Source of the DNA: Convolutriloba macropyga
Lineage: Eukaryota
Assembly (NCBI RefSeq): GCF_964194025.1
Contig: NC_134474.1
Coordinates: 44,888,001 to 44,952,000, forward strand
Direction of reading: 5' to 3'
Length of the DNA: 64,000 bases
This document shows positions 3,881 through 55,023 of this stretch, piece by piece. Below the pieces are notes generated by a model that was not told the DNA's origin, did no database searches, and saw nothing but the letters and a program-made list of their open reading frames with translations. A program made the position numbers and the translations under genes. How positions within the stretch are numbered: the stretch's first letter is position 1; each line of letters begins with the position of its first letter.

Positions 3881-4083
3881 GGTAATGACCAGAACAGGTT
3901 TGAACTGGCAGCATATGCCCTGAACCCAGACGTGAAAGTGATTGCCCCGTGGAGAATGCCAGAATTCTTCAACCGATTCCAGGGCAGACCAGACCTGCTC
4001 AAATACGCAGCCGAGAAGGGTATCCCGGTTGATGCTACACCCAGTGAGCCCTACTCCATCGATGACAATCTCATGCATATTAG
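3881..4083 (+). CDS. ASS1: argininosuccinate synthase, internal exon (203 nt)
   Basis: ttttag| [67 protein letters not shown](S) |gtacgt. Matches the ASS GNDQVRFE...KVIAPWR...NLMHIS region. Ends in phase 2 (AG). Confidence 0.97.
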
Positions 4084-4116: not shown

Positions 4117-4465
4117 TGTTCCGACCCTCTTAGTGGGGGGGGGGGGGGGGGACTATATAGTGAGCTGGATTTTTTTGCTCTGTCAATTTTCGGCGATCGA
4201 TATATTCATCGTGCAGAGCTGTGAATGATATTATTATAAAGCCCTGCAGTGTAGAATATATAGTTAAAAAGATTTTTCCCCAGGCGTTATGGAGGTTTGA
4301 AGTTACGTGAAAATTTGCCTGATTTCCGGTGTTTTTTTCATCTTCCGTAATTATTGCTCAATTTTGCTAATTTTTTGACGATTGACATTTTTATCGTAGA
4401 GAGTAGTGGGCGGAATCATTATAGAACTCATTAAGCGTAGAATAATAAATTAAAGAGTTTTTTTT
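4117..4465 (+). mobile_element. HINE-like family 2, 5' part
   Basis: Starts tgttccgaccc, then a hairpin/G-run and actatat, as at 23289. An inverted homologue lies near 17130-17220. Confidence 0.55.
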
Positions 4466-19309: not shown

Positions 19310-20872
19310 CATTTTCAAATATCTTTGAACCCAATGGCCGGGTTATTTCCAAAACAGTCCTGGAGCAAAAATTTTGGGGGGCCACCTTTTTGGTATAGTA
19401 GATAAATTATATACTTAAAATTTAACCCCTCAATAATTTTTACCTCCATTTTTCTTGATATCGTTGTTTTGTCAGTTTGTGTTTTCTGAAAAGCTTGTTT
19501 TAAAAATCCGAAAAATAAGATATTTTCAAAAAGTGAAATGCCGTTATTTTCACTAATAACAAATAAAGAGTTTCTGTTTGTGTCTGCATACTTATGGAGT
19601 CTGATCTCAAAATTGATTACACCTGCAAATTTTGAGATTTTGCTAAAATTTTTTATTTTTTTGATGGTCTTATCCGGAAATTGGAATATCGATTTATACT
19701 GTTATGATGAAAATGGTTTTTGGAAGGACCAATTTATGTTTTTGACTTTTATTTAGTTTGAAAGATTACAAAATACCATGCTTTCTACTTAAGCAATACC
19801 ACTGATGGTGAATATATAAAAGGGCGTATTTTGTTCACGCTAAATTTAACTGCCGATTGCTTATTTTGATCCCTCTGCGCATAAAAGGATTACTCTACGC
19901 CTACGTTCTTTACCTCCCCCATCAAGCACCAGTCTATTTTGTGAACAATCAGAAATAACAAAGACATCTTGAATAGTGTTGTGAGCTTTTGCTGGTAATT
20001 TCACAACCTGGATACATGAAAGACGTGCAATTTATCCCACAGCTTTTTAGGGAAAAATTGCTTACTAGTTGGTAGCTACATGGTGTTAGTTACTTAGGGG
20101 GAATTGTTAAACGCCCTGAAAATCTTAATCTAGCCTGCCTTTTGCCCCTAATCGCCACTTTTCCTTTGAATAGTGACTGGAGAATAAAAAGACTGGCAAA
20201 GGTCAATTAAGAGCATTGTATGTGCGAACGGGATTAATGCCTTAATCTCTCTTTCAATGCGCCCTCTCAACGAAATCTTTCATTTAGAGAGGTAGAATTT
20301 TGTTTGGTTCTGTTAATAAAACTATGCATTCGCTTATACTTTTCCGTGTGCGAAGTCACTATCAATGGAGCCATATTTATTATTTAATAATCCGGTGCAG
20401 ATTGTTTTTATGGTATCCTGCCAAAAATTGGCCTAATTTCTTTATATGTGTGGTGATCTGCAAGCGATCAAATAAGTGACATGGCATTAAGCAGCAAATT
20501 ATTGGAAAAATAGTCGTAGCCGTCTTTTTTTTGACCCGGTTTTGAAGTGTGTGCTCTATTGATCAATTGGTTTAATCGATGTTTTGACGGTAACTTTTTG
20601 CAATCATAATAAGGGGGTAGTATAAGCATGGATAACTCTGAAAATCGACCAGTACGTGATTGAATCAGCGTGTCTTACATGCAAGCCTAGTGTGCTAAGC
20701 ATTACACTGGTCTTAAACTCTACTTGGGGCATCTATGCGCCCTTCTCACGTTGTTTCTCGCTCCGCAATGCTTCTTGTCATTCTAGCCAAGTTTATGTTG
20801 AACAAGTCGAGATTCTGGTGTACAGATAACATTTGTTCTCTCAACTTTCTAACATAATGTTGGATTTTACAG

Positions 20873-20903
20873 TATGGAGTCGGGTCCCTTGGAAGACCCA
20901 AAT
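20873..20903 (+). CDS. ASS1: ASS1 31-nt exon, variant A (S-MESGPLEDPN)
   Basis: ttttacag|T ATG GAG TCG GGT CCC TTG GAA GAC CCA AAT|gtaagt. Completes the Ser codon from the previous exon and ends in phase 0. Equivalent to human SYEAGILENPK. Confidence 0.93.
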
Positions 20904-22219
20904 GTAAGTACAACTACATACATCCCTGTCTCTCTCATCCTCCTCTCTGTAGTGATGAGCAGCTTCTTTTATATAAACTTGTATTATCTTGTATTTTAAT
21001 GAAATAACTTTATAGTGAGGTATGAAATGAGCATAGCCGTATGTTTTAACTGCATCCTGATTCCTGATGCAACTGTCATGTGTGTTAGCAGCTTAGTTTG
21101 GTGACAGGTGTGATTGGGTGCATCTTTATTAGTCATCTATGGGCCTTTGAATTAACTTTCCTAGTTAAATGAGACTTTAGTTTGGTTACCTTCTGTTACG
21201 ACACGCGCTGTCACAGCACATTACCCAACGCCAAAATATACCCAATATTTTAACCTGATGTCGACATTACCAGAACGGCTGTTTGGCATGATAATAATAA
21301 CCAAGTGAGATAATGTTGAATGTAAAACGAAAAATTATGTTTACAAGTTTTAAATGTAAGACTAGCATATCTGGCGATGGCTCGCGGGCCAAGGCCATGC
21401 GCACAGTGCCGGCCCGTGCGACTTCATATGAAACGATTACAAGCGAACATGTGATTAAATTGTCCGCTAAACTTTGATGAAACCTGCCTGTAATATCGAC
21501 TGCTAATTTGTAATCGGATCATTGAGAGAAATGATCAAAGGAAATAAATTGGGTATTATAGCATTGGGAATTTTGGCATTGAGTAATTTTTTATGTAACC
21601 GACGCACGATAGGTTAGCGTGTTACTTAGTCATCAGAAGTTCTATCGTTTGATACCTGGAGTTTCCATGTAACTGCCACATATATCATGCTGAACTATAA
21701 ATTGCAGCATTTTTTAATTATCAACAGTACTTATTTACACCTTCTAACAAGTGAATCGATATGAGAAACAAGCTAGTTAAGTTGAAAAAGTATGTCGGCC
21801 CTGCATCCTTTTCCTCAGTTGAAAAAAAGTGCCGAAAATTGGAGTTTATATATTTATATGAGCTAATAGTGTGGTATTTGTGTGTGCTCCTTGTAATGGA
21901 TAGTCCTATTTGCTTAAAACTATTGAAAAAAAACTATAATGAGTACAATAACGCGCGTATTATGTTATTAGTTTGTTCACACAGGGAAAGGTTATCAGAA
22001 TTGTTAGATTAGTAGTGGTAGTTTGGTTATGTTGGAGGGATCTTTTACTCCCCCCCCGGTACCTTATGCACCTGTCATTACATAGTATACACTTGTGTTA
22101 ATGGGTGATTAAAAATAATTTGCACCCACTAAGCCTCGGAGGATACTGAAACAGAAAAGATGTTATGTTGATGATTTGAAGTAGCTATTATTTGCAATAG
22201 TGTTCTGTCCTCTTCTTAG

Positions 22220-22250
22220 CATGGAATCGGGCGCCTTGGAAAGGCCAAAT
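22220..22250 (+). CDS. ASS1: ASS1 31-nt exon, variant B (S-MESGALERPN)
   Basis: ctcttcttag|C ATG GAA TCG GGC GCC TTG GAA AGG CCA AAT|gtgagt. Same length and phases as variant A, with canonical splice sites. Confidence 0.88.
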
Positions 22251-23151
22251 GTGAGTGCATGATAACACACGAAATTAAACCCAACCTAATCGCAACCACT
22301 AACTAGAAATCGCCATAATTAATCAACTCAAAGATTTTGGCATCACTTCGTTCGCGAGAAGAATCTTGATAGGCCAGACGATGAAATTTTTTGTGCTTAT
22401 TTCAAAAAAATCAAGGCAGAGAAAGGATGTCAAGGTCTTATTTTGTTTGGTCTAGATAACCGAATTTGGATTGCACGTTTTTGTTTCTCCTTTTTATTCA
22501 TAAAACTTGAACTGAACAAAATAATCTGTTTGATGATAACTCCCTTTTTTCCTCTGTCTGTGACTGATATTGAAAGGATTACTAACTCAGTTATCGAGAC
22601 TTGTCTGCTCCCCGAAGCAAAAGAAGCGGTTCCTTTGCCAAAGAGGATGTAGGTCGCTGCGAGATATCTAACCAATATAAATTCATCCTCTACTCTGCTT
22701 CATGCTCACGGCTGAGCGGTTCTCAATGTTGAAATGAAAAAAAAAAGAAATATTGAATTCGAGTTTCAGCACTAAATAGTTAATTTAAACAATAGCACGG
22801 CATTTAAGTACCGTTTATTTTTCATTTACTAGAAAATGATTTGACGAGTTTGAAGAGAAACAGTATGAAGGTTTCAACGCAACCACCGTCTAACAAACAT
22901 TTAAAAAATTAAAAGGCCCACCATAATGCACATAGCCTATGCTCGCGCTCGGAATTTTAACCCCATCGCGTTTCACAGGTTATCTCAATACTATTGTAGT
23001 TCACATCTAGACTGCTAATGAACCCAAGTTATCTTTGACAGCTTCAGCTTTTTGGGACAGTAATATTGTTTTGACGATTGCATGATCTCTACTGTGTCAT
23101 TGTGACGAGCTCAATAAGCGTGCGAGAATTTGTATTTGGACTGTTTTTCAG

Positions 23152-23242
23152 GAAGAGCCTCCAAAGTCAACGTACAAATACACGACCAACCCTCTCGAAG
23201 CACCTGACATGCCTACAAAACTCGAGATTGAGTTCTCTCAAG
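23152..23242 (+). CDS. ASS1: ASS1 exon (91 nt)
   Basis: ttttcag|EEPPKSTYKYTTNPLEAPDMPTKLEIEFSQ(G)|gtatgt. Aligns to human [31 protein letters not shown]. Confidence 0.94.
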
Positions 23243-23340
23243 GTATGTGTTCCCACTCTAATTGATGTTTTCCAGTTCTGCGCATAATTGTTCCGACCCA
23301 CTTTAGTGGGGGGAGAAACTATATACTCAACTAGGTTTTT

Positions 23341-24275
23341 AATAGCCGCCCTCATCTTCTCAGCCGGCTATTATAGCGCTCCTAATTTTTTTACAATTCA
23401 AAGAATTTGAATTGTATTGGGGCGCTGTCTTTTTTTTTAAGATCTGTTCACACATTTTATGATTTTTGAAGTCAAATTGGAGTAGTGATTTTGGTCACGC
23501 CGAAACAGGAAGTGGAGCGAAAAAGCGAGTGGTTTTGCGGCGTGAATTGTTTTCGCTCCAAATTTAAAGTAGAGTGAGAAAACGGTGTTTGAACAAAAAT
23601 TGGCTTTCTCGCTAGTGGTTTTTTGTTCACATGCGGCAATTTGACTTTGATTTTTACTGTTTTTTCGTTTTTTTTTGGATCGGATTTTTTTCTAAATGGT
23701 TTTACCAATCCATTCATAGTCCGTTCTAGGTCTAGTTTTCTGTTTAGTCAATGAAAATTCTTTGAATTGTACGTCAGGACTTGTCCTGCTATGTTTTTTA
23801 CTTCGTCGAACTTTTCGCTTTACCATTTTTCCGCTTTTTCAGCATTTTGCGTGAAATCTTTTTGACATTTTTAGGCTAGTTTCTCTCTTCTCTCATTCTG
23901 CTAAAAGTGAATTTGAACATCAGCTGCTCAGCAAAGCATTTCAAAATGAACAGAGTCAGAATAAAAAATGAAGTCAGAAATAGAAACGGGATAAACCCAT
24001 AAAGCCCAATTTTAGATGCCCGCTATTTGAACGTCGTTCCTACAAGTCTTAGTTACCATCTCTTATGCTTATTGGTATTGATAGTAGCCCCTGTAGCCTC
24101 TCTCTAAGAAACAGAAGTATGTTCAACTACGAAATGCCGTCAAAATAAATCGGACTTAACAAATATTTTTGTACAAAAATCTTTTTTTTTTTCGATATCT
24201 TCTATTCTTTCAATCCCAATCATGCTTATTGGAATCAACGGCGGCTATTTTCTGGCAATCTGCCGGGTATGTTTT
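23341..24275 (+). mobile_element. HINE-like family 3 element (nested)
   Basis: 5' aatagccgcc with internal inverted repeat cggctatt. 3' ggcggctatt (24240-24249), hairpin ctggca-atc-tgccgg, then gtatgtttt. Inserted in a T-run. Confidence 0.7.
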
Positions 24276-24506
24276 AAAGTTTTTTTGTTTTTCTAAATGT
24301 TATATGCAGAACAGGACAATTAAATCAAGAAATAATAGTGACTGTTCCAATTGGCTTCCTGAGGAGTTTCAAGGAAACCTATCTAGTTTACTTAGTCGAA
24401 AGCTTGTCTTTTTGATTTTAAAAATTGCTTGTTTTCAATATGAACAGTGGTTTGTTGTGTTGCACATTTTTCTCCTTTTTAATCAACTTAACGCTTAATG
24501 TTAGCA

Positions 24507-28788: not shown

Positions 28789-28941
28789 GAATTCCGGTGA
28801 AAGTGGTCAATTTGGACGAGCCAGAGAAGGTGTACGATAAGGCCCTGGATCTGTTCATGTACCTGAATGAGGTGGGAGGCAAGAATGCCATCGGAAGAGT
28901 TGACATTGTCGAGAACCGATTCATCGGAATGAAATCTAGAG
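28789..28941 (+). CDS. ASS1: ASS1 exon (153 nt)
   Basis: ttgcag|(G)[50 protein letters not shown](G)|gtaagt. Contains the diagnostic [14 protein letters not shown]. Confidence 0.97.
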
Positions 28942-29344: not shown

Positions 29345-29476
29345 GTGTGTACGAGACGCCTGCAGCCACAATTCTCTACCACGCTCACTTGGACCTGGAG
29401 CTGTTCTGCGTAGACAAGGAGGTGTACAGAATCAAGTCATACCTCTCGGCCAAGTTTGCTGAACAAGTCTACAACG
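29345..29476 (+). CDS. ASS1: ASS1 exon (132 nt)
   Basis: tttag|(G)[43 protein letters not shown](G)|gtaagt. Confidence 0.97.
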
Positions 29477-29965: not shown

Positions 29966-30188
29966 GCTTCTGGTACAGCCCCGAGTGTGAGTTTGTACGA
30001 CACTGTATTGACAAGACACAGGAGGTTGTAGAGGGCAAGGTTAGAGTGATGCTATACAAGGGTGGCTGCCACATTCTGGGCAGAGAGTCCCCTCTTAGTG
30101 TGTACAATGAGAGTCTAGTCAGCATGGACGTCAAGGGAGACTACGAGCCCAGTGACGCCGACGGATTCATCAAGATCAATGCACTCAG
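29966..30188 (+). CDS. ASS1: ASS1 exon (223 nt)
   Basis: tttag|(G)[73 protein letters not shown](R)|gtttga. Confidence 0.96.
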
Positions 30189-31268: not shown

Positions 31269-32173
31269 AGCTAATGTAGTAAGTGAATGTCAATGTCGAA
31301 GCACATTCTGTCGTCTAATGTCTTGAATGAACCTTTTGCTCTTGCTTTGGTGCTTTTGAAGTTTCATGAACCGCCGAATTACGTATCGTAGAAGCTATCG
31401 CCATAAATTAACTCTTGCTGGTTCTGGTATATGGTGAGCAAGTATAAACGTGGGATCTATGTCTGGTGCACAATTTGCTGCTAGATGTGTGTGCTATAGT
31501 AGTGGTACCTTGTGTCTCTTTGTCTGATTAGCCAGCTAGTTGCTACATGGAAAATAAAATATTACAGAGATTTTGTGACATTGTAACCTTCTGATTTTTG
31601 TTTTTGATCTTGTATTCTACCCAGTCAATATATATGCATTCTAAACGCAGTTTTTCAAAACCAGAGAAGTCAGGAGTGCATTACTAGGGAAGTAAATCAG
31701 CGTAACAAATACTACCTAGTGAGCAGTTGTCGGTGAATTCTGGTTTACGACTTTATAAATAGCCGCCGTCAGCCTCTCAGCGGCTTTTATTGAGGAGCTC
31801 TCCTTTAAACCATCCAAGAATTCGATTATATTGGTGCTCTGCCTTTTTGGCAGATGTTTTCACACATTTTTAATATATTTTTTAGCTGTATATGTCATTA
31901 ACGCGAAGTTAAACACTCAAAATGATATCAATGTTAACCACTCTTTCCTAGTTTCTAGAATTTTTTTAGTTTTCCGGCCTTCAGAGCAAAATGAATCAGT
32001 GGCTTGAAGATTGGCTACTGAATGGCTGGGAGAAAGACAAGATTTCCCTATAATTTCCATGTTTTGACAATTTTTGCCTTTTTCCGAGTTTTTGATCTTC
32101 AGGGGCGAGTGAAACTCTTCTAGGTGTTGATAAGATGTTACTTTTTGTTTCGAGTTTCAATGGAGTGCTTTTT

Positions 32174-34333
32174 AATTGCTCTCAAACGAATTTTGTAGCA
32201 ATTATATTAGTCCTGTCGGTCTGTTTTTATGCGATTTTTCGCTTGACCGATTTTTCGTCTGACGCTTTTGACTTTTCGTCCTCAAAAACGGGATAAACAG
32301 GTAGCGCCCAGCGGGCATTATGTGCTCTTAGAGCCTTTCAGCTCTGTTTCCGCTCTAACTGTTTTGGAGACTCATACTTATACTTATGGTGTGATGGGCG
32401 GTTCTTTGAGGTTGAAGACACCCCCACTGTTGACCCCCCCCCCACCGCGCTGTTGCCCCCCCCCCATCCCAGTGTTGCACACCCCAATCAGCCCCGGGTG
32501 CATCCTCCCCCCTCCTTCCCTCGCCTGGCTAGCTACTGACGAACAACCGCTAGCTAAAAACGCAAATTTATACTATTTTGCAATTTTTTTCAAGCTTTTT
32601 GAAAATTTTCGACATTTTTTGATTTTTATCAGCCCTAGGTGTCAAGGAACCTACTTTAGGTTTTTAAAGTAGGTTACTGCGTAGTTTCTAGTTGTATTGT
32701 AATGGTTTCAACTTTTTACCATCACGAATTTTAGCTTTTTTTTGACAAAACGTGCAATTTTTCTTAAATTTTTTGATATTTTTTTTCTTATTCAGGTCTT
32801 TCCAGACCCAGGGGCCAGAAAACATCCTATGGGGTTCGATAATAAGTTACTGACAAATTTTTAATGGTAATGGAATAGTTTTTCAACTTTTTAATGTCAC
32901 AATTTTCAGCAATTTTTTGATAAAACTTGCTTTTTTTCAAGATTTTTTTAAAATTTTTTGTCTTTTTTTTAGATTTTTAGCCTTAAAAGCCAAGGAACCT
33001 CCTCTAGGGTTAGAAAATATTTTTGTGAATAATTTTTATATTAACTGGAATGTCTTGCAATATTTTATCATCACGAATTTTAGCATTTTTTTGATATTTT
33101 TAGCCATTTTTTTCCAATTTTTTAACATTTATTGTCATTATTCTGAGCCTCACGATTTTTTGATTTTTTGAGCCTCAAGGGTCAAAAAAGCCTCGATTAG
33201 GGTTTGATAATAAGTTATTGGAAAATTTTTGTTCGTCATGAATTTATTTTCAACTTTTTATTTTCAAGTTTTAGCAATTTTTAAAAAAAATTTGCACTTT
33301 TTTTTGAAGTTTTTTGAAATTTTTTGTCATTTTTTAAGTTTCTCTAGTCTCAAGTGCCACGGAATTTCCTCTAGGGTTTGATAATCTGTTTCTGCATAGT
33401 TTATAGATGTATTGAAATGTTCAAGATTTTAACACGAATTTAAGCAACTTTTAAAAATATATGCAGTTTTTCATGTTATTTAAATTTTTTCCAGCCAGAG
33501 GCCCTGGGACCTCCTCCAAGGTTTGATAATAAGCTGCTGCATAGTTTCTAGAGTTAATGGGATTGTGATCAACATTTTTTATGACTCCACTTTTAGTAAT
33601 ATTTAAAACTTTTAGTTTTAAAGTAATTAAATTTAAAATTTTTGGAAAATTTTTGTTCCAAGTCTATGGATCTTTGAGCCAGTGAAACCATTTCAGGCTT
33701 GAAGCAGGGATACTGGATAGTCTCTTGAGACAATGAAATGGTTCTAAAGATTTTAATGTCTTGAATTTTTGTAAGATTTTGTTAAAATTTTCCAAATTTT
33801 TCAATTTTTCCTTTTCTGAGTTTAACGACCATTACTGGTCAACGAAACTTTTCAAGTCTCGGAAATGGGTTACTTGACAGAACGTTCGAGACAAAAAATG
33901 GTTTTCATTTTTTTTCGGAGTTCAAAATTTTTTTAATTTTGCCTTTTTCAGTTTTTTTCTATATGATTTATTTATTAATAAGGATAGAAAACTTGTTGCA
34001 GTGTCGAATCCCATCATGGAAGATATTCCTGTCTCCTCTCTCTTTCAGTTGGGGTTCCTTTCCTTCTATTTCTCGTTCACCTTTTATCTCTCTCTCTCTC
34101 TCTCCATTATTAATTGCTCTCAAAAGCAATTTGTAGCAAATATATTAATCCTGTTCCTCCTTTATGCAATGTTTCGGTTTGCCGATTTTTCGTCTGAGTA
34201 ATTTGACTTTCGTATTCAGAAACGGGATAGAGAGGTAGCGCCCTGAAGACACTAAACCGTGACTAGCTGTTGACGAAGCCAACCGCTCGCCGGTCGTTTG
34301 AGAGCAATTCGCCCGACGTTAGTCGGTTATGTT
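32174..34333 (+). mobile_element. HINE-like family 1 elements with an internal diverged ~175-bp tandem repeat
   Basis: 5' aattgctctcaaac...agcaatt (32174; again 34112). 3' gtttgagagcaatt (34296-34309) with hairpin ccgac-gtta-gtcgg. A motif like gccaaggaacctcctctagggtttgataataag recurs near 32640, 32815, 32990, 33180, 33355 and 33500. Confidence 0.65.
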
Positions 34334-36378: not shown

Positions 36379-36530
36379 NNNNNNNNNNNNNNNNNNNNNN
36401 NNNNNNNNNNNNNNNNNNNNNNNNNNNNNNNNNNNNNNNNNNNNNNNNNNNNNNNNNNNNNNNNNNNNNNNNNNNNNNNNNNNNNNNNNNNNNNNNNNNN
36501 NNNNNNNNNNNNNNNNNNNNNNNNNNNNNN
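36379..36530. other. assembly gap (152 N)
   Basis: Run of N. Confidence 1.
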
Positions 36531-36815: not shown

Positions 36816-39800
36816 CATACTAGGCAAAAAACGATTCGTTTGTAGAAGATTTCTCTCATACCATGAAATACAACCTATGAGCTGAAACATCTTGGTATCC
36901 ACCAGTTCGGTCTTAATAGAACTATTTATTCGAGTATTCACCCCTCCTCTTTATAATTTTTCTTTGAATATCAGTGACAAATCGGCAGTTTCTTTATCTT
37001 ACGAATACAATAACATACAGAAACAAAACACTAGCATTTCCAGAAGGAGCGTCTGCTCCGACTTCTTACCTGGACTGACACAGGAAATGAGTGAACTGAA
37101 ATTTAATGATGGCAGATCTCCTTTCGAGACTTGCGTTTCAATAAAACCGTTTCATTCCGATAAAAACTCCTTATAAAGTCTCAGCATTGGAGCACGATAT
37201 AGTCATGTCCAAAAAAGATACTTGTAAATGAGTTCAAACTAGGAGAAAATGGTGTGTGGTACTTAGACAGCCGTGTACCAAATAAAAATTGTTGTAATGA
37301 GCTCTCTGATCTTTCACTCTTTTGCAATGATATATCATTTTATTCACATAAACTAAATCTACCGCCATCTGTGGAACTTAATTTTTCACACACTATCTTT
37401 TTAAAACGTTATCTCATTAATCGCTTTCGAATTCAGTTGTTCTTTCTGATCTTTTTTGAGCAAGATCATCGTCAGATTGGTGAAGTCATTGCAAGTGCAT
37501 GCCACCATTTAGAATATTAGATTTGCACATACAGCAATCCCTTTTGATGTGTAATAATATATTTGCAACCGCCAATACAGTTCAACTTAAAGCTCAATAG
37601 TTCGCTGGCAATTGCTCCAACATTTTTTTGAAAATCAATTAGCGCAGTCAAAGAAGGAATCAGCATGTTCACTACTTAGAATAGAACCATTGTGGTAGAA
37701 AGCCTCTTGGAAAAATCTGTTTCATTGGGAACACTAATTTGGGGCATGTTATCAGACGAAGGAATATCTGTAGACAAACTCCGAGAAGATTCTCTCAAGT
37801 AACCCTACCCAATGAACCCATTTACAAATCTAAGCTAAACAAGATTCCCACCCAAAAGGAGTTGGATTGTATGATTCGAAACGAACAGCTAAAAGAAACT
37901 AACTTCGTTAAGAAATGGAGGCAGTGGAGTTCCTGTGTGAAGAAAATCCATGAAAGTGTGATGAAGCTGTTTGAATCCCCTATTTATTTTAAGAATGGAA
38001 TGTCAAAATTTCTGCGCGATAGATAATCTATTTTTGACATTGACAAACTGACGACTCGAGAGTTGTTCAAAAAATTTGATCAAATCTTCGTTAATGAAAA
38101 ACATAACTTTTGAGCGTTCTTTTTTGTAACCCGTAAGCAAATGAAAAATAAACCTGTTGGAAAATTCTATGGGGCACTTGTGGAGTTTTTACTCAATTGC
38201 GATCTTCTTTAAGAAAGATTCTCGTGTTGAGGCCGTGAAAACCGGTAGTAATCTAATTTTTCAACTCACTCAAACGCCTCCTCTCTCGGATCTTTGATCA
38301 TACTAGGCTAAAAACGATTCGTTTGTAGAAGTTATCTCTCATACCATGAAATACAACCTATGAGCTAAATCATCTTGGGATCAACCAGTTCGGTCTTAAG
38401 AGAACTATTTATTCGAGTATTCACCCCTCCTCCTTATAATTGTTCTTTGGATAAAAGTGACAAATCGGCAGTTTCTTTATCTTACGAATACAATAACATA
38501 CAGAAAAAAAAACTAGCATTTCCAGAGGGAGCGTCTGCTCTGTCTTCTTACCTGGACTGACACAGGAAATGACTGAACTGAAATTTAATGATGGCAGATC
38601 TCCTTTCGAGATTTGCGTTTCAATAAAACCGTTTCATTCCGATAAAAAAATCCTTATAAAGTCTCAGCATTGGAGCACGATATAGTCAAGTCCAAAAAAA
38701 GATACTTGTAAATGAGTTCAAACTAGGAGAAAATGGTGTGTGGTACTTAGACAGCCGTGTACCAAAAAAAAATTGTTGTGATGAGCCCTCTGATCTTTCA
38801 CTCTTTTGCAATGATATATCATTTTATTCACATAACCTAAATCTACCGCCATCTGTGGAACTTAATTTTTCACACACTATCTTTTTAAAACGTTATCTCA
38901 TTAATCGCTTTTGAATTCAGTTGTTTTTTCTGATCGTTTTTGAGCAAGATCATCGTCAGATTGGTGAAGTCATTGCAAGTACATGACACCATTTAGAATA
39001 TTAGAATTGCACATTCAGCAATACCTTTTGATGTGTAATAATACATTTGCAACCTTGAATACAGTTCAACTAAAAGCTCAATAGTTCGCTGGCAATTGCT
39101 CCAACATTTTTTTGAAAATCAATTAGCGCAGTCAAAGAAGGAATCAGCATGTTCACTACTTAGAATAGAACCATTGTGGTAGAAAGCCTCTTATAAAAAT
39201 CCGTTTCTTTGGGAACACTAATTTGGGGCATGTTATCAGACGAAGGAATATCTGTAGACAAACTCCGAGAAGATTCTCTCAAGTAACCCTACCCAATGAA
39301 CCCATTTACAAATCTAAGCTGAACAAGAGTCCCACCCAAAAGGAGTTGGATTGTAAGATTCGAAACGAACAGCTAAAAGAAACTAACTTCGTTAAGAAAT
39401 GGAGGCAGTGGAGTTCCTGTGTGAAGAAAATCCATGAAAGTGTGATGAAGCTGTTTGAATCCCCTATTTATTTTAAGAATGGAATGTCAAAATTTCTGCG
39501 CGATAGATAATCTATTTTTGACATTGACAAACTGACGACTCGAGAGTTGTTCAAAAAAATTTGATTAAATCTTCGTTAATGAAAAACATAACTTTTGAGC
39601 GTTCTTTTTTGTAGTCCGTAAGCAAATGAAAGGTAAACCTGTTGGAAAATTCTATGGGGCACTTGTGGAGTTTTTACTCAATTGCGATCTTCTTCAAGAA
39701 AGATTCTCGTGTTGAGGCCGTGAAAGCCGGTAGTAATCTAATTTTTCAACTCACTCAAACGCCTCCTCTCTCGGATCTTTGAGCATACAAGGCTAAAAAC

Positions 39801-42800
39801 GATTCGTTTGTAGAAGTTATCTCTCATACCATGAAATACAACCTATGAGCTAAATCATCTTGGGATCAACCAGTTCGGTCTTAAGAGAACTATATTTATT
39901 CGAGTATTCACCCCTCCTCCTTATAATTGTTCTTTGAATAAAAGTGACAAATCGGCAGTTTCTTTATCTTACGAATACAATAACATACAGAAACAAAACA
40001 CTAGCATTTCCAGAGGGAGCGTCTGCTCTGACTTCTTACCTGGACTGACACAGGAAATGAGTGAACTGAAATTTAATGATGGCAGATCTCCTTTCGAGAT
40101 TTGCGTTTCAATAAAACCGTTTCATTCCGATAAAAAAATCCTTATAAAGTCTCAGCATTGGAGCACGATATAGTCAAGTCCAAAAAAAGATACTTGTAAA
40201 TGAGTTCAAACTAGGAGAAAATGGTGTGTGGTACTTAGACAGCCGTGTACCAATCAAAAATTGTTGTAATGAGCCCTCTGATCTTTCACTCTTTTGCAGT
40301 GATATATCATTTTATTCACATAACCTAAATCTACCGCCATCTGTGGAACTTAATTTTTCACACACTATCTTTTTAAAACGTTATCTCATTAATCGCTTTT
40401 GAATTCAGTTGTTTTTTCTGATCGTTTTTGAGCAAGATCATCGTCAGATTGGTGAAGTCATTGCAAGTACATGACACCATTTAGAATATTAGAATTGCAC
40501 ATTCAGCAATACCTTTTGATGTGTAATAATACATTTGCAACCTTGAATACAGTTCAACTAAAAGCTCAATAGTTCGCTGGCAATTGCTCCAACATTTTTT
40601 TGAAAATCAATTAGCGCAGTCAAAGAAGGAATCAGCATGTTCACTACTTAGAATAGAACCATTGTGGTAGAAAGCCTCTTATAAAAATCCGTTTCTTTGG
40701 GAACACTAATTTGGGGCATGTTATCAGACGAAGGAATATCTGTAGACAAACTCCGAGAAGATTCTCTCAAGTAACCCTACCCAATGAACCCATTTACAAA
40801 TCTAAGCTGAACAAGAGTCCCACCCAAAAGGAGTTGGATTGTAAGATTCGAAACGAACAGCTAAAAGAAACTAACTTCGTTAAGAAATGGAGGCAGTGGA
40901 GTTTCTGTGTGAAGAAAATCCATGAAAGTGTGATGAAGCTGTTTGAATCCCCTATTTATTTTAAGAATGGAATGTCAAAATTTCTGCGCGATAGATCATC
41001 TATTTTTGACATTGACAAACTGACGACTCGAGAGTTGTTCAAAAAAATTGATTAAATCTTTGTTAAGGAAAAACATAACTTTTGAGCGTTCTTTTTTGTA
41101 ACCCGTAAGCAAATGAAAGGTAAACCTGTTGGAAAATTCTATGGGGCACTTGTGGAGTTTTTACTCAATTGCGATCTTCTTTAAGAAAGATTCTCGTGTT
41201 GAGGCCGTGAAAGCCGGTAGTAATCTAATTTTTCAACTCACTCAAACGCCTCCTCTCTCGGATCTTTGAGCATACAAGGCTAAAAACGATTCGTTTGTAG
41301 AAGTTATCTCTCATACCATGAAATACAACCTATGAGCTAAATCATCTTGGGATCAACCAGTTCGGTCTTAAGAGAACTATATTTATTCGAGTATTCACCC
41401 CTCCTCCTTATAATTGTTCTTTGAATAAAAGTGACAAATCGGCAGTTTCTTTATCTTACGAATACAATAACATACAGAAACAAAACACTAGCATTTTCAG
41501 AGGGAGCGTCTGCTCTGACTTCTTACCTGGACTGACACAGGAAATGAGTGAACTGAAATTTAATGATGGCAGATCTCCTTTCGAGATTTGCGTTTCAATA
41601 AAACCGTTTCATTCCGATAAAAAAATCCTTATAAAGTCTCAGCATTGGAGCACGATATAGTCAAGTCCAAAAAAAGATACTTGTAAATGAGTTCAAACTA
41701 GGAGAAAATGGTGTGTGGTACTTAGACAGCCGTGTACCAAATAAAAACTGTTGTAATGAGCCCTCTGATCTTTCACTCTTTTGCAATGATATATCATTTT
41801 ATTCACATAACCTAAATCTACCGCCATCTGTGGAACTTAATTTTTCACACACTATCTTTTTAAAACGTTATCTCATTAATCGTTTTTGAATTCAGTTGTT
41901 TTTTCTGATCGTTTTTGAGCAAGATCATCGTCAGATTGGTGAAGTCATTGCAAGTACATGCCACTATTTAGAATATTAGAATTGCACATTCAGCAATTCC
42001 TTTTGATGTGTAATAATACATTTGCAACCTTGAATACAGTTCAACTTAAAGCTCAATAGTTCGCTGGCAATTGCTCCAACATTTTTTTGAAAATCAATTA
42101 GCGCAGTCAAAGAAGGAATCAGCATGTTCACTACTTAGAATAGAACCATTGTGGTAGAAAGCCTCTTATAAAAATCCGTTTCTTTGGGAACACTAATTTG
42201 GGGCATGTTATCAGACGAAGGAATATCTGTAGACAAACTCCGAGAAGATTCTCTCAAGTAACCCTACCCAATGAACCCATTTACAAATCTAAGCTGAACA
42301 AGAGTCCCACCCAAAAGGAGTTGGATTGTAAGATTCGAAACGAACAGCTAAAAGAAACTAACTTCGTTAAGAAATGGAGGCAGTGGAGTTTCTGTGTGAA
42401 GAAAATCCATGAAAGTGTGATGAAGCTGTTTGAATCCCCTATTTATTTTAAGAATGGAATGTCAAAATTTCTGCGCGATAGATCATCTATTTTTGACATT
42501 GACAAACTGACGACTCGAGAGTTGTTCAAAAAATTTGATTAAATCTTTGTTAAGGAAAAACATAACTTTTGAGCGTTCTTTTTTGTAACCCGTAAGCAAA
42601 TGAAAGGTAAACCTGTTGGAAAATTCTATGGGGCACTTGTGGAGTTTTTACTCAATTGCGATCTTCTTTAAGAAAGATTCTCGTGTTGAGGCCGTGAAAG
42701 CCGGTAGTAATCTAATTTTTCAACTCACTCAAACGCCTCCTCTCTCGGATCTTTGAGCATACAAGGCTAAAAACGATTCGTTTGTAGAAGTTATCTCTCA

Positions 42801-45800
42801 TACCATGAAATACAACCTATGAGCTAAATCATCTTGGGATCAACCAGTTCGGTCTTAAGAGAACTATATTTATTCGAGTATTCACCCCTCCTCCTTATAA
42901 TTGTTTTTTGAATAAAAGTGACAAATCGGCAGTTTCTTTATCTTACGAATACAATAACATACAGAAACAAAACACTAGCATTTCCAGAGGGAGCGTCTGC
43001 TCTGACTTCTTACCTGGACTGACACAGGAAATGAGTGAACTGAAATTTAATGATGGCAGATCTCCTTTCGAGATTTGCGTTTCAATAAAACCGTTTCATT
43101 CCGATAAAAAAATCCTTATAAAGTCTCAGCATTGGAGCACGATATAGTCAAGTCCAAAAAAAGATACTTGTAAATGAGTTCAAACTAGGAGAAAATGGTG
43201 TGTGGTACTTAGACAGCCGTGTACCAATCAAAAATTGTTGTAATGAGCCCTCTGATCCTTCACTCTTTTGCAATGATATATCATTTTATTCACATAACCT
43301 AAATCTACCGCCATCTGTGGAACTTAATTTTTCACACACTATCTTTTTAAAACGTTATCTCATTAATCGCTTTTGAATTCAGTTGTTCTTTCTGATCGTT
43401 TTTGAGCAAGATCATCGTCAGATTGGTGAAGTCATTGCAAGTACATGCCACTATTTAGAATATTAGAATTGCACATTCAGCAATCCCTTTTGATGTGTAA
43501 TGATACATTTGCAACCTTGAATACAGTTCAACTTAAAGCTCAATAGTTCGCTGGCAATTGCTCCAACATTTTTTTGAAAATCAATTAGCGCAGTCAAAGA
43601 AGGAATCAGCATGTTCACTACTTAGAATAGAACCATTGTGTTAGAAAGCCTCTTATAAAAATCCGTTTCTTTGGGAACACTAATTTGGGGCATGTTATCA
43701 GACGAAGGAATATCTGTAGACAAACTCCGAGAAGATTCTCTCAAGTAACCCTACCCAATGAACCCATTTACAAATCTAAGCTGAACAAGAGTCCCACCCA
43801 AAAGGAGTTGGATTGTAAGATTCGAAACGAACAGCTAAAAGAAACTAACTTCGTTAAGAAATGGAGGCAGTGGAGTTTCTGTGTGAAGAAAATCCATGAA
43901 AGTGTGATGAAGCTGTTTGAATCCCCTATTTATTTTAAGAATGGAATGTCAAAATTTCTGCGCGATAGATCATCTATTTTTGACATTGACAAACTGACGA
44001 CTCGAGAGTTGTTCAAAAAATTTGATTAAATCTTTGTTAAGGAAAAACATAACTTTTGAGCGTTCTTTTTTGTAACCCGTAAGCAAATGAAAGGTAAACC
44101 TGTTGGAAAATTCTATGGGGCACTTGTGGAGTTTTTACTCAATTGCGATCTTCTTTAAGAAAGATTCTCGTGTTGAGGCCGTGAAAGCCGGTAGTAATCT
44201 AATTTTTCAACTCACTCAAACGCCTCCTCTCTCGGATCTTTGAGCATACAAGGCTAAAAACGATTCGTTTGTAGAAGTTATCTCTCATACCATGAAATAC
44301 AACCTATGAGCTAAATCATCTTGGGATCAACCAGTTCGGTCTTAAGAGAACTATATTTATTCGAGTATTCACCCCTCCTCCTTATAATTGTTCTTTGAAT
44401 AAAAGTGACAAATCGGCAGTTTCTTTATCTTACGAATACAATAACATACAGAAACAAAACACTAGCATTTCCAGAGGGAGCGTCTGCTCTGACTTCTTAC
44501 CTGGACTGACACAGGAAATGAGTGAACTGAAATTTAATGATGGCAGATCTCCTTTCGAGATTTGCGTTTCAATAAAACCGTTTCATTCCGATAAAAAAAT
44601 CCTTATAAAGTCTCAGCATTGGAGCACGATATAGTCAAGTCCAAAAAAAGATACTTGTAAATGAGTTCAAACTAGGAGAAAATGGTGTGTGGTACTTAGA
44701 CAGCCGTGTACCAAATAAAAATTGTTGTAATGAGCCCTCTGATCTTTCACTCTTTTGCAATGATATATCATTTTATTCACATTACCTAAATCTACCGCCA
44801 TCTGTGGAACTTAATTTTTCACACACTATCTTTTTAAAACGTTATCTCATTAATCGCTTTTGAATTCAGTTGTTCTTTCTGATCGTTTTTGAGCAAGATC
44901 ATCGTCAGATTGGTGAAGTCATTGCAAGTACATGCCACCATTTAGAATATTAGAATTGCACATTCAGCAATCCCTTTTGATGTGTAATAATACATTTGCA
45001 ACCTTGAATACAGTTCAACTAAAAGCTCAATAGTTCGCTGGCAATTGCTCCAACATTTTTTTGAAAATCAATTAGCGCAGTCAAAGAAGGAATCAGCATG
45101 TTCACTACTTAGAATAAAACCATTGTGGTAGAAAGCTTCTTATAAAAATCCGTTTCATTGGGAACACTAATTTGGGGCATGTTATCAGACGAAGGAATAT
45201 CTGTAGACAAACTCCGAGAAGATTCTCTCAAGTAACCCTACCCAATGAACCCATTTATAAATCTAAGCTAAACAAGAGTCCCACCCAAAAGGAGTTTGAT
45301 TGTAAGATTCGAAACGAACAGCTAAAAGAAACTAACTTCGTTAAAAAATGGAGGCAGTGGAGTTCCTGTGTGAAGAAAATCCATGAAAGTGTGATGAAGC
45401 TGTTTGAATCCCCTATTTATTTTAAGAATGGAATGTCAAAATTTCTGCGCGATAGATCATCTTTTTTTGACATTGACAAACTGACGACTCGAGAGTTGTT
45501 CAAAAAAATTTGATTAAATTTTCGTTAATGAAAAACATAACTTTTGAGCGTTCTTTTTTGTAACCCGTAAGCAAATGAAAGGTAAACCTGTTGGAAAATT
45601 CTATGGGGCACTTGTGGAGTTTTTACTCAATTGCGATCTTCTTTAAGAAAGATTCTCGTGTTGAGGCCGTGAAAGCCGGTAGTAATCTAATTTTTGAACT
45701 CACTCAAACGCCTCCTCTCTCGGATCTTTGAGCATACAAGGCTAAAAACGATTCGTTTGTAGAAGTTTTCTCTCATACCATGAAATACAACCTATGAGCT

Positions 45801-48800
45801 AAATCATCTTGGGATCAACCAGATCGGTCTTAAGAGAACTATTTATTCGAGTATTCACCCCTCCTCCTTATAATTGTTCTTTGAATAAAAGACACAAATC
45901 GGCAATTTCTTTATCTTACGAATACAATAACATACAGAAACAAAACACTAGCATTTCCATAAGGAGCGTCTGCTCCGACTTCTTACCTGGACTGACAGAG
46001 GAAATGAGTGAACTGAAATTTAATGATGGCAGATCTCCTTTCGAGATTTGCGTTTCAATAAAACCGTTTCATTCCGATAAAAAAATCTTTATAAAGTCTC
46101 AGCATTGGAGCACGATATAGTCAAGTACAAAAAAAGATACTTGTAAATGAGTTCAAACTAGGAGAAAATGGTGTTTGGTACTTAGACAGCCGTGTACCAA
46201 ATAAAAATTGTTGTAATGAGCCCTCTGATCTTTCACTCTTTTGCAATGATATATCATTTTATTCACATAACCTAAATCTACCGCCATCTGTGGAACTTAA
46301 TTTTTCACACACTATCTTTTTATAACGTTATCTCATTAATCGCTTTTGAATTCAGTTGTTCTTTCTGATCTTTTTTGAGCAAGATCATCGTCAGATTGGT
46401 GAAGTCATTGCAAGTACATGCCACCATTTAGAATATTAGAATTGCACATTCAGCAATCCCTTTTGATGTGTAATAATACTTTTGCAACCTTGAATACAGT
46501 TCAACTAAAAGCTCAATAGTCCGCTGGCAATTGCTCCAACATTTTTTTGAAAATCAATTAGCGCAGTCAAAGAAGGAATCAGCATGTTCACTACTTAGAA
46601 TAGAACCATTGTGGTAGAAAGCCTCTTGGAAAAATCCGTTTCATTGGGAACACTAATTTGGGGCATGTTATCAGACGAAAGAATATCTGTAGACAAACTC
46701 CGAGAAGATTCTCTCAAGTAACCCTACCTAATGAACCCATTTACAAATCAAAGCTAAACAAGAGTCCCACCCAAAAGGAGTTGGATTGTAAGATTCGAAA
46801 CGAACAGCTAAAAGAAACTAACTTCGTTAAGAAATGGAGGCAGTGGAGTTCCTGTGTGAAGAAAATCCATGAAAGTGTGATGAAGCTGTTTGAATCCCCT
46901 ATTTATTTTAAGAATGGAATGTCAAAATTTCTGCGCGATAGATCATCTATTTTTGACATTGACAAACTGACGACTCGAGAGTTGTTCAAAAAAATTTGAT
47001 TAAATCTTCGTTAATGAAAAACATAACTTTTGAGCGTTCTTTTTTGTAACCCGTAAGCAAATGAAAGGTAAACCTGTTGGAAAATTCTATGGGGCACTTG
47101 TGGAGTTTTTACTCAATTGCGATCTTCTTCAAGAAAGATTCTCGTGTTGAGGGCGTGAAAGCCGGTAGTAACCTAATTTTTCAACTCACTCAAACGCCTC
47201 CTCTCTCGGATCTTTGAGCATACAAGGCTAAAAACGATTCGTTTGTAAAAGTTATCTCTCATACCATGAAATACAACCTATGAGCTAAATCATCTTGGGA
47301 TCAACCAGTTCGGTCTTAAGAGAACTATTTATTCGAGTATTCACCCCTCCTCCTTATAATTGTTCTTTGAATAAAAGTGACGAATCGGCAGTTTCTTTAT
47401 CTTACGAATACAATAACATACAGAAACAAAACACTAGCATTTCCAGAAGGAGCGTCTGCTCCGACTTCTTACCTGGACTGACACAGGAAATTAGTGAACT
47501 GAAATTTAAGGATGGCTGATCTCCTTTCGAGATTTGCGTTTCAATAAAACCGTTTCATTCCGACAAAAAGAATCTTTATAAAGTCTCAGCATTGGAGCAC
47601 GATATAGTCAAGTCCAAAAAAGATACTTGTAAATGAGTTCAAACTAGGAGAAAATGGTGTGTGGTACTAAGACAGCCGTGTACCAAATAAAAATTGTTGT
47701 AATGAGCCCTCTGATCTTTCACTCCTTTGCAATGATATATCATTTTATTCACATAACCTAAATCTACCGCCATCTGTGGAACTTAATTTTTCACACACAA
47801 TCTTTTTATAACGTTATCTCATTAATCGCTTTTGAATTCAGTTGTTCTTTCTGATCTTTTTTGAGCAAGATCATCGTCAGATTGGTGAAGTCATTGCAAG
47901 TACATGCCACCATTTAGAATATTAGAATTGCACATTCAGCAATCCCTTTTGATGTGTAATAATACTTTTGCAACCTTGAATACAGTTCAACTAAAAGCTC
48001 AATAGTCCGCTGGCAATTGCTCCAACATTTTTTTGAAAATCAATTAGCGCAGTCAAAGAAAGAATCAGCATGTTCACTACTTAGAATAGAACCATTGTGG
48101 TAGAAAGCCTCTTGGAAAAATCCGTTTCATTGGGAACACTAATTTGGGGCATGTTATCAGACGAAAGAATATCTGTAGACAAACTCCGAGAAGATTCTCT
48201 CAAGTAACCCTACCTAATGAACCCATTTACAAATCAAAGCTAAACAAGAGTCCCACCCAAAAGGAGTTGGATTGTAAGATTCGAAACGAACAGCTAAAAG
48301 AAACTAACTTCGTTAAGAAATGGAGGCAGTGGAGTTCCTGTGTGAAGAAAATCCATGAAAGTGTGATGAAGCTGTTTGAATCCCCTATTTATTTTAAGAA
48401 TGGAATCTCAAAATTTCTGCGCGATAGATCATCTATTTTTGACATTGACAAACTGACGACTCGAGAGTTGTTCAAAAAAATTTGATTAAATCTTCGTTAA
48501 TGAAAAACATAACTTTTGAGCGTTCTTTTTTGTAACCCGTAAGCAAATGAAAGGTAAACCTGTTGGAAAATTCTATGGGGCACTTGTGGAGTTTTTACTC
48601 AATTGCGATCTTCTTCAAGAAAGATTCTCGTGTTGAGGCCGTGAAAGCCGGTAGTAACCTAATTTTTCAACTCACTCAAACGCCTCCTCTCTCGGATCTT
48701 TGAGCATACAAGGCTAAAAACGATTCGTTTGTAAAAGTTATCTCTCATACCATGAAATACAACCTATGAGCTAAATCATCTTGGGATCAACCAGTTCGGT

Positions 48801-50326
48801 CTTAAGAGAACTATTTATTCGAGTATTCACCCCTCCTCCTTATAATTGTTCTTTGAATAAAAGTGACGAATCGGCAGTTTCTTTATCTTACGAATACAAT
48901 AACATACAGAAACAAAACACTAGCATTTCCAGAAGGAGCGTCTGCTCCGACTTCTTACCTGGACTGACACAGGAAATTAGTGAACTGAAATTTAAGGATG
49001 GCTGATCTCCTTTCGAGATTTGCGTTTCAATAAAACCGTTTCATTCCGACAAAAAGAATCTTTATAAAGTCTCAGCATTGGAGCACGATATAGTCAAGTC
49101 CAAAAAAGATACTTGTAAATGAGTTCAAACTAGGAGAAAATGGTGTGTGGTACTAAGACAGCCGTGTACCAAATAAAAATTGTTGTAATGAGCCCTCTGA
49201 TCTTTCACTCCTTTGCAATGATATATCATTTTATTCACATAACCTAAATTTACCTCCATCCGTGGAACTTAATATTTCACACACTGTCTTTTTAAAACGT
49301 TATCTCATTAATCGTTTTTGAATTCAGTTGTTCTTTCTGATCTTTTTTGAGCAAGATCATCGTCAGATTGGTGAAGTCATTGCAAGTACATGCCACCATT
49401 TAGAATATTAGAATTGCACATTCAGCAATCCCGTTCCATGTGTAATAATACATTTGCAACCGCGAATACAGTTCAACTAAAAGCTCAATAGTTCGCTGGC
49501 AATTGCTCCAACATTTTTTTGAATATCAATTAGCGTGTTCACTACTTAGAATAGAACCATTGTGGTAGAAAGCCTCTTGGAAATATCCACTTCATTGGGA
49601 ACACTAATTTGGGGCATGTTATCAGACGAAGGAATATCTGTTGACAAACTCCGAGAAGATCCTCTCAAGTAACCCTACCTAATGAACCCATTTACAAATC
49701 AAAGCTAAACAAGAGTCCCACCCAAAAGGAGTTGGATTGTAGGATTCGAAACGAACAGCTAAAAGAAACTAACTTCGTTAAGAAATGGAGGCAGTGGAGT
49801 TCCTGTGTGAAGAAAATCCATGAAAGTGTGATGAAGCTGTTTCAATCCCATATCTTAGTTTAATAATGGAATGTCGAAATTTCTGTGCGATAGATCATGT
49901 ATTTTTGACATTGACAAACTGACAGCTCGAGAGCTGTTCGAAAAGTTTTTATGAAATCTTCTTTAATGAAAAACAAAACTTTTGAGCGTTCTTTTTGTAA
50001 CCCGCAAGCAAATGAAAGGTAAACCTGTTGGAAAATTCTATGGGGCACTTGTGGAGTTTTTTTCTCAATTGCTATCTTCTTTAAGGAAGATTCTCGTGTT
50101 GAGGCCGTGAAAGGCGTTAGTAACCTAATTTTTCAACTCTCTCAAACGCCTCCTCTCTCGGATCTTTGAGCATACAAGGCTAAAAACGATTCGTTTGTAG
50201 AAGTTTTCTCTCATACCATGAAATACAACCTATGAGCTAAATCATCTTGGGATCAACCAGTTCGGTCTTAAGAGAACTGTTTATTCGAGTTTTCACCCCT
50301 CCTCCTTATAATTGTTCTTTGAATAT
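36816..50326. repeat. macrosatellite: ~9.1 tandem copies of a ~1486-bp unit
   Basis: Equivalent positions at 37739, 39223, 40711, 42198, 43685, 45172, 46658, 48144 and ~49609. Confidence 0.98.
37665..38210 (+). pseudogene. decayed gag-like fragment (probable Ty3/Gypsy), present in every array unit
   Basis: Frameshifted LLRIEPLW*KAS...WEH, QVTLPNEPIY, IRNEQL, NITFER-FFVTRKQMKNKPVGKFYGALVEFLLNCD. The RKQ...F...L...C pattern resembles retrotransposon Gag and is co-linear with 63070-63590. Confidence 0.6.
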
Positions 50327-53769: not shown

Positions 53770-54093
53770 CACTATAAGTAACAAAATTGCACGTGCTATG
53801 AAATTGAGTTGCTGAATTGATGGATTCTTAAACCTGAAAATTGAGTAGTTTTTTTTTTCAATAAAATTTACACACCTTGGTTACCATCTGTTTCGTGGAG
53901 TGCAAGTGGAGTGTAGTTTATTTTGGGTCTACGGGGGCTAACCGAAGTGCTTATCAGTTCCCCGGTGAGATCGTACCTATTCTTTGTCCAAGTTTTTGGG
54001 GTGTTCTCTCCCCCCCCAAAGTTTTCTGGGGCGGTTTGCCTGTGAAAACAACTGAAACTATTCCCCGACGCCCATTTTTATGCAATTCTCAAG

Positions 54094-55023
54094 ATGACAA
54101 AAAACAAAAAAGCGAAACCTAATGCGCATATCAGTTTATTAGATTTTCCCTGCGGATCCTGTCAGAAAAATTGTGATAGCTTTTGTGTACAGTGTTCAAA
54201 CTGCAAAACGTGGTTTCATGATTCGTGCTCAAATTTACCAAACAGCATTTTGGCAGTTTTGGGAAAAATTAAGGGCATAAGTTGGTCTTGTGAAAATTGC
54301 GAGCAAAAAGGTCAACTTCCAGTAACAAAAGCCGATATTGATTCTTTGTCGGATAATATTCATTCACTTAATGCACAAATTCAACAAGAATTGTCTGAAA
54401 TCAGAAATGATATTTACCAATTGAAACAAAACTCTTGCGAAGCTAAAATTGAGCCGCTTCAAAATGAAATCAAAGACTCAAAGAGCAGCGTGGGTTCTCT
54501 GAAGCAAAATAGCCAACCAAAACCTCAATATAATCAACAATCGGAAAACCACATGAGCGACAAATTAATAATTTTTGGAATACAGGAGAATCAAGACCAG
54601 ATTTCGAGAATTGAAGCAATGAATACAGACAAAAAACAAGTAGCATCTATTTTCGAACAAATAATGGGACTGAAAGATGTCGTAATTCATGACTGCTTCA
54701 GATTAGGGAAACTCGTTAACGAGAAGAACAGGCCTGTTGTAGTGAAAATTGATAATGCGTGGACTTTCAGAACGATCTTCTTATCTGTTTCAAAGTTAAA
54801 AGGTTCGGGATTTGTCATAAAAAAATTTCTCTCCGTTGAGGACTACAAAAAGGAAAAAACACTATATCAGCGGAAGACAAATCTGATAAACAATTTTGGC
54901 TACGAAAAACACAGTTTCTCCATTAAAGGTCAAGAGTTATTTTATAAGGGAAAAGTTATCGCTGAAAATTTTAACCCGAATAGTATGCAATCCTCTACAG
55001 ATCAAAACGTCCATACGTCCTGA
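54094..55023 (+). CDS. LINE ORF1 (PHD finger, coiled coil, L1-transposase-like RRM region)
   Basis: CGSC...CVQCSNCKTWFHDSC...WSCENC (C4HC3); LIIFGIQE; FRLGK...RPVVVK. Confidence 0.92.
   Translation: MTKNKKAKPNAHISLLDFPCGSCQKNCDSFCVQCSNCKTWFHDSCSNLPNSILAVLGKIKGISWSCENCEQKGQLPVTKADIDSLSDNIHSLNAQIQQELSEIRNDIYQLKQNSCEAKIEPLQNEIKDSKSSVGSLKQNSQPKPQYNQQSENHMSDKLIIFGIQENQDQISRIEAMNTDKKQVASIFEQIMGLKDVVIHDCFRLGKLVNEKNRPVVVKIDNAWTFRTIFLSVSKLKGSGFVIKKFLSVEDYKKEKTLYQRKTNLINNFGYEKHSFSIKGQELFYKGKVIAENFNPNSMQSSTDQNVHTS

Follow-up and report, generated by a model that had tools for sequence, protein, structure and literature searches.

We report that a 31-nt exon of an argininosuccinate synthase (ASS) gene occurs as two tandem copies, exon A and exon B, in the 64,000-nt stretch of genomic DNA analysed here (the window), and that either copy by itself leaves the reading frame of the enzyme open. 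We favour, as rather likely, the explanation that this exon underwent a tandem duplication whose two products persist as alternative coding exons, with A as the default and B as a minor or condition-specific form. Taken together, the two exons probably constitute a conserved mutually exclusive pair, in which the use of B is what we infer.

The ASS gene, of which the window holds a part, lies on the + strand. Upstream of the twin exons, a constitutive exon at 3881-4083 (GNDQNRFEL...DDNLMHI, followed by the AG of the Ser189 codon; donor AG/gtacgt, phase 2) matches residues 123-189 of the human ASS chain (PDB 2nz2) with E=6.9e-29. Downstream of them follow a constitutive exon at 23152-23242, which is entered in phase 0 and encodes EEPPKSTYKYTTNPLEAPDMPTKLEIEFSQ plus G, and exons at 28789-28941 (beginning IPVKVV), 29345-29476 (ending EQVYN) and 29966-30188 (FWYSPECEF...GFIKINAL; donor AG/gtttga), all on the + strand; the end at 23242 is a small correction to an earlier note on this DNA. 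Relatives of the C-terminal ASS exon carry PF20979, the ASS families being PF00764 and PF20979, and by its sequence the gene is a clear orthologue of human ASS1. The 31-nt exon covers the equivalent of human residues Ser189 (from its third codon base) to Lys199. In human ASS1 citrulline is bound by Ser189 and Glu191 (PMC13289927), and both the A form and the B form encode this serine and this glutamate, as they do Gly193, Leu195 and Pro198. The placement of the segment at the S189/E191 citrulline site, proposed in the earlier note, thus stands, as the segment follows Ser189 and includes Glu191.

Exon A (20873-20903, + strand, 31 nt) reads TATGGAGTCGGGTCCCTTGGAAGACCCAAAT between an acceptor ttacag and a donor gtaagt and encodes (S)MESGPLEDPN, and exon B (22220-22250, + strand, 31 nt) reads CATGGAATCGGGCGCCTTGGAAAGGCCAAAT between tcttag and gtgagt and encodes (S)MESGALERPN. 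They are of equal length, have AG/GT splice sites and are identical at 24 of 31 nt, a match that none of 200 shuffles of the intron reached. The pattern of splice sites plus conserved codons occurs twice in the window against an expectation of 0.00, and no third copy was found there on either strand. The 1316-nt intron between A and B (20904-22219, + strand) bears no similarity to the other flanks; in blastn comparison the likeness of the two copies spans 39 nt only, that is, the exon and the splice consensus, and the flanks match at random level. The copies are homologous, stand in tandem and have the same splice phases, which are the structural features of a mutually exclusive pair. The splice signals of B are strong, and no U12-type splice sites were found. 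In all these respects the earlier description was accurate: two canonical, same-phase 31-nt exons 1316 nt apart, unlike flanking introns, and three synonymous differences between the copies (AGT/AGC, GAG/GAA and GGT/GGC). The peptides of interest for proteomics are MESGPLEDPNEEPPK and MESGALERPNEEPPK.

Eight public runs come from one study of the same organism, and we compared four of them, of which X1, X5 and X6 behave as DNA and X7 as RNA. In X1 (0 differences) and in X5 a single DNA contig spans both exons, X6 has two contigs that each cover one of the twin exons, and an independent assembly contig (L001), which is 96-98% identical to the window and represents another haplotype or individual, spans A and B in the same arrangement. 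Exon A is identical in the L001 haplotype, and the sole polymorphism in B is a synonymous A/G at 22226. With a genome heterozygosity of about 1-2%, one might suspect an assembly duplication or two alleles collapsed side by side; because the contigs of X1, X5 and L001 each carry both exons in the same arrangement, the pair is real DNA, this artefact is ruled out, and with the pair present in a second species as well (see below) we regard it as having virtually no chance of being correct.

Several repeats and structural variants lie in and around the gene. A repeat at about 21428-21609, inside the intron between A and B, reaches up to ~400 times single-copy DNA depth (16987 against ~40 in X6). 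A palindromic element of about 53 nt at 23339-23392 (ttaatagccg...cggctattat...) has a DNA depth of 10^5-10^6 in the three DNA runs, where single-copy sequence has ~5-40, and so must exist in tens of thousands of copies; it is plentiful in RNA as well (depth 6725), and the ~400-nt stretch beside it (23393-23793) is absent from the other haplotype (L001). An element of the form gttccgaccc..ttagtgggggg..actatata is found at 4118-4160 and 23290-23325, ~35-50 nt 3' of two ASS donors, and its first copy includes a run of 18 G at 4135-4152. A run of 8 C lies at 22050-22057, ~160 nt 5' of B, and varies in length between haplotypes (+CCCCC in X5). An Rfam scan of 20000-24500 gave no match. Just 3' of ASS, L001:14844-16241 contains a 465-aa ORF with a faint DNA_pol_B_2 match, which suggests a Maverick/Polinton-type element, and it is here that good alignment of the two haplotypes ends; in the window, 32173-34331 (~2.1 kb) is absent from L001. 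Further along lie an assembly gap or masked stretch (36379-36530), an array of at least 8 copies of a ~1487-nt unit (~36900-50200; near-identical ORFs at 39169, 40657, 42144, 43631, 45118, 46604 and 48090), whose period is above 500 and thus beyond the reporting range of TRF, and a LINE (54046-57861) in which single stops divide three successive long ORFs of the same frame (325, 337 and 608 aa). By eye, the first of these has a Cys/His zinc-finger-like motif, the second is endonuclease-like and the third reverse-transcriptase-like.

In silico splicing gives an open frame with A only and with B only. Inclusion of both creates a TGA precisely where exon 23152 is joined, omission of both shifts the frame and leads to a stop after 34 codons, and B with its retained intron reaches a stop after three codons. 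Since the frame is open only with A alone or with B alone, exactly one copy is needed to make ASS, just as the earlier note had reasoned.

Scanning a metagenome contig collection with a degenerate DNA pattern for the exon led to a second tandem pair, on the minus strand of a 1193-nt contig with 39% GC (JAAUXW010310868.1, hereafter L007). Its copy 1 (31 nt) reads TATGGAATCTGGATCTCTGGAAGACCCCAAC between ttgcag and gtgagt (codons T ATG GAA TCT GGA TCT CTG GAA GAC CCC AAC) and encodes (S)MESGSLEDPN; its copy 2 (31 nt) reads CATGGAATCCGGAACCCTAGAAAACCCTAGT between tgctag and gtgagt (codons C ATG GAA TCC GGA ACC CTA GAA AAC CCT AGT) and encodes (S)MESGTLENPS. Copy 2 did not match the search pattern and so was observed independently of it. 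As in the window, the AGT-Ser copy (starting with T) comes first and the AGC-Ser copy (starting with C) second, and in both cases Asp occupies position 197 in the first copy; copy 1 is the counterpart of A and copy 2 that of B. All four exons encode Met at the position of human Tyr190, which is Tyr in human and the other ASS sequences compared and His in one alphaproteobacterial sequence. The copies in L007 are separated by an intron of 349 nt, and the L007 introns cannot be aligned to the window, where only exon A plus ~15 nt aligns (80%). Both L007 copies have intact frames and AG/GT sites, on one relative's 1.2-kb contig that holds no other ASS exon. Judged from these features, a second, diverged species has kept the pair, and conservation of B, which had been set as a test beforehand, is borne out in this one relative by the intact second copy. 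The other metagenome match, L006, was rejected as chance (GC 53%, no acceptor), and the same exon pattern had no match in prokaryotic genome and viral collections.

The substitutions that separate the copies are in keeping with coding constraint. Between A and B there are 3 synonymous and 2 replacement codons (P=0.016 for 2 or fewer replacements and no stop under random substitution), between A and copy 1 of L007 6 synonymous and 1 replacement (P=0.0002 for 1 or fewer replacements), and between B and copy 2 of L007 4 synonymous and 3 replacement (P=0.023 for 3 or fewer replacements and no stop), with all six sensitive positions unchanged in this last comparison (P=0.007). Eight of the 11 residues are identical in all four exons (S189, M190, E191, S192, G193, L195, E196 and P198 in human numbering), and the copies vary at 194, 197 and 199; A and B themselves differ by Pro/Ala at human I194 and Asp/Arg at human N197. 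These positions can be compared with a scan of 2,193 variants of human ASS1, in which most substitutions of Ser189 and Glu191 abolish function and G193, L195 and P198 are moderately sensitive (PMC13289927). The same scan gave 0.99 for N197D, 0.96 for N197K and 0.96-1.02 across all six N197 variants that were assayed, with I194 variants at 0.80-1.02 and K199 variants at 0.90-1.06 (PMC13289927). Thus, S189, E191, G193, L195 and P198 are invariant across the copies and lose function in the human scan, and 194, 197 and 199 are variable across the copies and tolerant in it. Because the changes are mostly synonymous and the replacements are confined to tolerant positions, both copies look protein-coding and old, the pattern being that expected if both were translated within a working ASS. 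An old duplication with both copies under selection, as put forward in the earlier note, accordingly agrees with the L007 pair and with the substitution pattern. The same note had further envisaged a PKM-like switch between isoenzymes differing near the active site. The P/A and D/R differences themselves are there; an active-site switch is not supported, because 194 and 197 tolerate mutation in the human enzyme, and a strong effect of these differences on catalysis is unlikely. The human scan relied on yeast complementation, which would miss subtle kinetic or regulatory effects.

RNA evidence comes from one run of one sample (X7), in the form of Logan assembled contigs, which can show the presence of a form, not its absence. 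X7 has one joint, 20903->23152 (GT..AG), at a depth of ~2073; the sequence attached 5' of A is the end of exon 3881-4083, exon 23152-23242 has a depth of ~1950 (1948), and beyond 23242 the loose end matches the beginning of exon 28789. From this joint and the attached sequences, the dominant product is an mRNA that joins the upstream exon, A and the next exon. Of the two forms whose junctions had been predicted, the A form was thereby recovered, and for B no joint into 22220 or out of 22250 (22250->23152 included) is present among the X7 contigs, which discard minor forms; since such contigs drop minor paths of equal length, absence of the B form cannot be concluded. Joints for double inclusion (20903->22220) or skipping (4083->23152) are likewise not listed in the assembled contigs of this one run. 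The depth of the A joint (2073) is not below that of the downstream exon (1948), which limits B to at most a few percent there, and B is at most a minor form in the X7 sample. RNA containing B is nevertheless present, in low-depth (~10x) X7 contigs on the + strand (22227-23181) that start inside B and run through the B donor into exon 23152; this RNA is ~0.5% as deep as the mRNA and unspliced at the B donor. No X7 contigs fall on 22156-22226, and depth is 4.5 in the intron just after A and ~0-2 over 21200-22226. Coverage rises from ~0 to ~10 a few bases into B, as might be expected if the B acceptor were used now and then. The contig start at 22227 is one base after the heterozygous synonymous site 22226 A/G. 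A search of the protein database with a 59-aa B-junction peptide returned no B-type fragment, and exact look-ups of two intronic ORFs, made for further RNA contigs across B, had no match.

How B contributes to the gene could be read in other ways. B might be a regulatory poison or decoy exon that, when spliced after A or with its intron retained, introduces a stop and leads to degradation, so tuning ASS output. The immediate TGA of the A + B product, the stop three codons into the retained intron, the strong splice signals of B and the fact that the only B-containing RNA is unspliced at the B donor, at ~0.5% of mRNA depth, all speak for this. Such a function needs a length and splice sites, not codons; yet B shares 9 of 11 residues with A, keeps all function-critical residues in common with copy 2 of L007 through synonymous changes, and has replacements only where the human scan is tolerant. 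A poison exon brings a stop by its own inclusion and is conserved at the nucleotide level; B alone is in frame, only the A + B combination yields a stop, and conservation follows the codons, with synonymous changes. We therefore consider a regulatory role of B unlikely; were B regulatory and not coding, it would be an example of a coding-looking decoy exon that controls enzyme dosage.

A duplication relic, that is, an unused pseudo-exon kept by chance, would account for the absence of a mature B junction from the contigs of one RNA data set and of a B-type fragment from the protein database, but it would have to explain how the flanks diverged to random level while the B exon, its frame and both splice sites stayed intact, how a second copy survives intact in a species with introns that cannot be aligned, and why the substitutions are non-random; on these grounds it appears quite improbable. 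The prospects are no better for the idea that the B acceptor marks an internal start, by way of a spliced leader or an internal promoter, with the ATG at B bases 2-4 opening an N-terminally truncated ASS that lacks the nucleotide-binding domain. RNA coverage does begin abruptly inside B with none upstream, and a Met opens all four exon copies at the human Tyr190 position. However, none of the contigs carries a leader sequence, the contig start coincides with the heterozygous site 22226, which is enough on its own to break the assembly graph, and a start at B leaves the retained 31-nt length and the donor site unexplained, making this reading very improbable.

Returning to a pair of alternative coding exons, we propose that the 31-nt ASS exon was duplicated in tandem long ago and that splicing takes exactly one of the two retained copies, A by default, with B taking its place in certain cell types, stages or conditions. 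Products that carry both copies or neither would be truncated, and nonsense-mediated decay would probably clear them, such that exclusivity may be enforced by the reading frame together with decay. The inter-copy introns of 1316 and 349 nt give no sign of steric exclusion, and competing RNA pairing between intron ends, as evaluated with RNAduplex, is no better than in shuffles (z -1.5 to +1.2). The inverted repeats found look like chance and are not common to both species. G:C pairing across the 18-kb intron is conceivable, with duplex energies not above shuffles. The two enzyme forms would differ at the surface-tolerant positions 194 (Pro/Ala) and 197 (Asp/Arg) and share unchanged substrate-critical residues, and any difference between them may be subtle, such as a change of surface charge beside the citrulline pocket.

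A more far-reaching possibility, which we offer tentatively, is that B gives rise to a genuine isoenzyme, specific to a tissue or condition, with its Ala194/Arg197 surface beside the citrulline pocket. If so, this surface would alter the affinity for substrate or the binding of a partner, for instance argininosuccinate lyase or nitric oxide synthase. A single ASS gene could in that case supply two arginine pathways, with an arrangement retained since before the split of two distant invertebrate lineages. The usual view of ASS is that of a housekeeping enzyme with one form, active in arginine, urea and nitric oxide metabolism. The pair lends itself to a simple test, with two differing residues, a well-studied fold and a full human mutational map.

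Alternative or mutually exclusive exons for this part of ASS did not turn up in full-text literature searches. Among other eukaryote ASS loci, the segment is single-copy within a larger exon in L002, L008 and L009; L003 has one copy, of which the 5' intron alone is shared with the window and likewise interrupts the Ser189 codon in phase 2; most of L004 is masked, and L005 and L010 are without the segment. From this single-copy state, both the micro-exon and its duplication appear confined to the lineage shared by the animal of the window and the L007 organism. The intron after residue 199 is not shared with L003 (L003:1-60), a distant eukaryote, and introns are absent from both sides of the segment in two compact AT-rich genomes (L002:9583-9888; L008:4373-4729). 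Searched alone against the protein database, the C-terminal exon had no close relative; in a representative protein search it matched the same species at 100% and then sequences of at most 76% identity.

Among known systems, exons 9 and 10 of PKM are likewise adjacent and homologous, and their common length is not divisible by three, so that one must be chosen, which gives the PKM1 and PKM2 isoenzymes. The PKM exons are 167 nt long and differ at 22 residues that make up an allosteric pocket, and their regulators are known; in contrast, the ASS exons are 31 nt long and differ at two residues, with no isoform difference or regulator on record. With pairs of the FGFR2 IIIb/IIIc type the ASS pair shares equal length and phase, a stop upon double inclusion or skipping, and an origin by tandem duplication, but it does so at micro-exon scale and with exclusivity and use of the second exon that are, for ASS, predicted. 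COQ2, with its a-form and e-form in annelids, molluscs, nematodes and flatworms, resembles the ASS pair as another metabolic enzyme with tandem homologous exons; its a and e exons are mutually exclusive, change few residues near the substrate site and are kept across invertebrate lineages, and the choice between them controls rhodoquinone versus ubiquinone synthesis (10.1101/2024.06.25.600561). For COQ2 both forms occur in transcripts and the switch is demonstrated, whereas for ASS only A is seen in mRNA and the differing residues sit at positions that are tolerant in human ASS1. Alternative exons that swap the strand following the citrulline-binding serine would add ASS to PKM and COQ2 as metabolic enzymes diversified by splicing.
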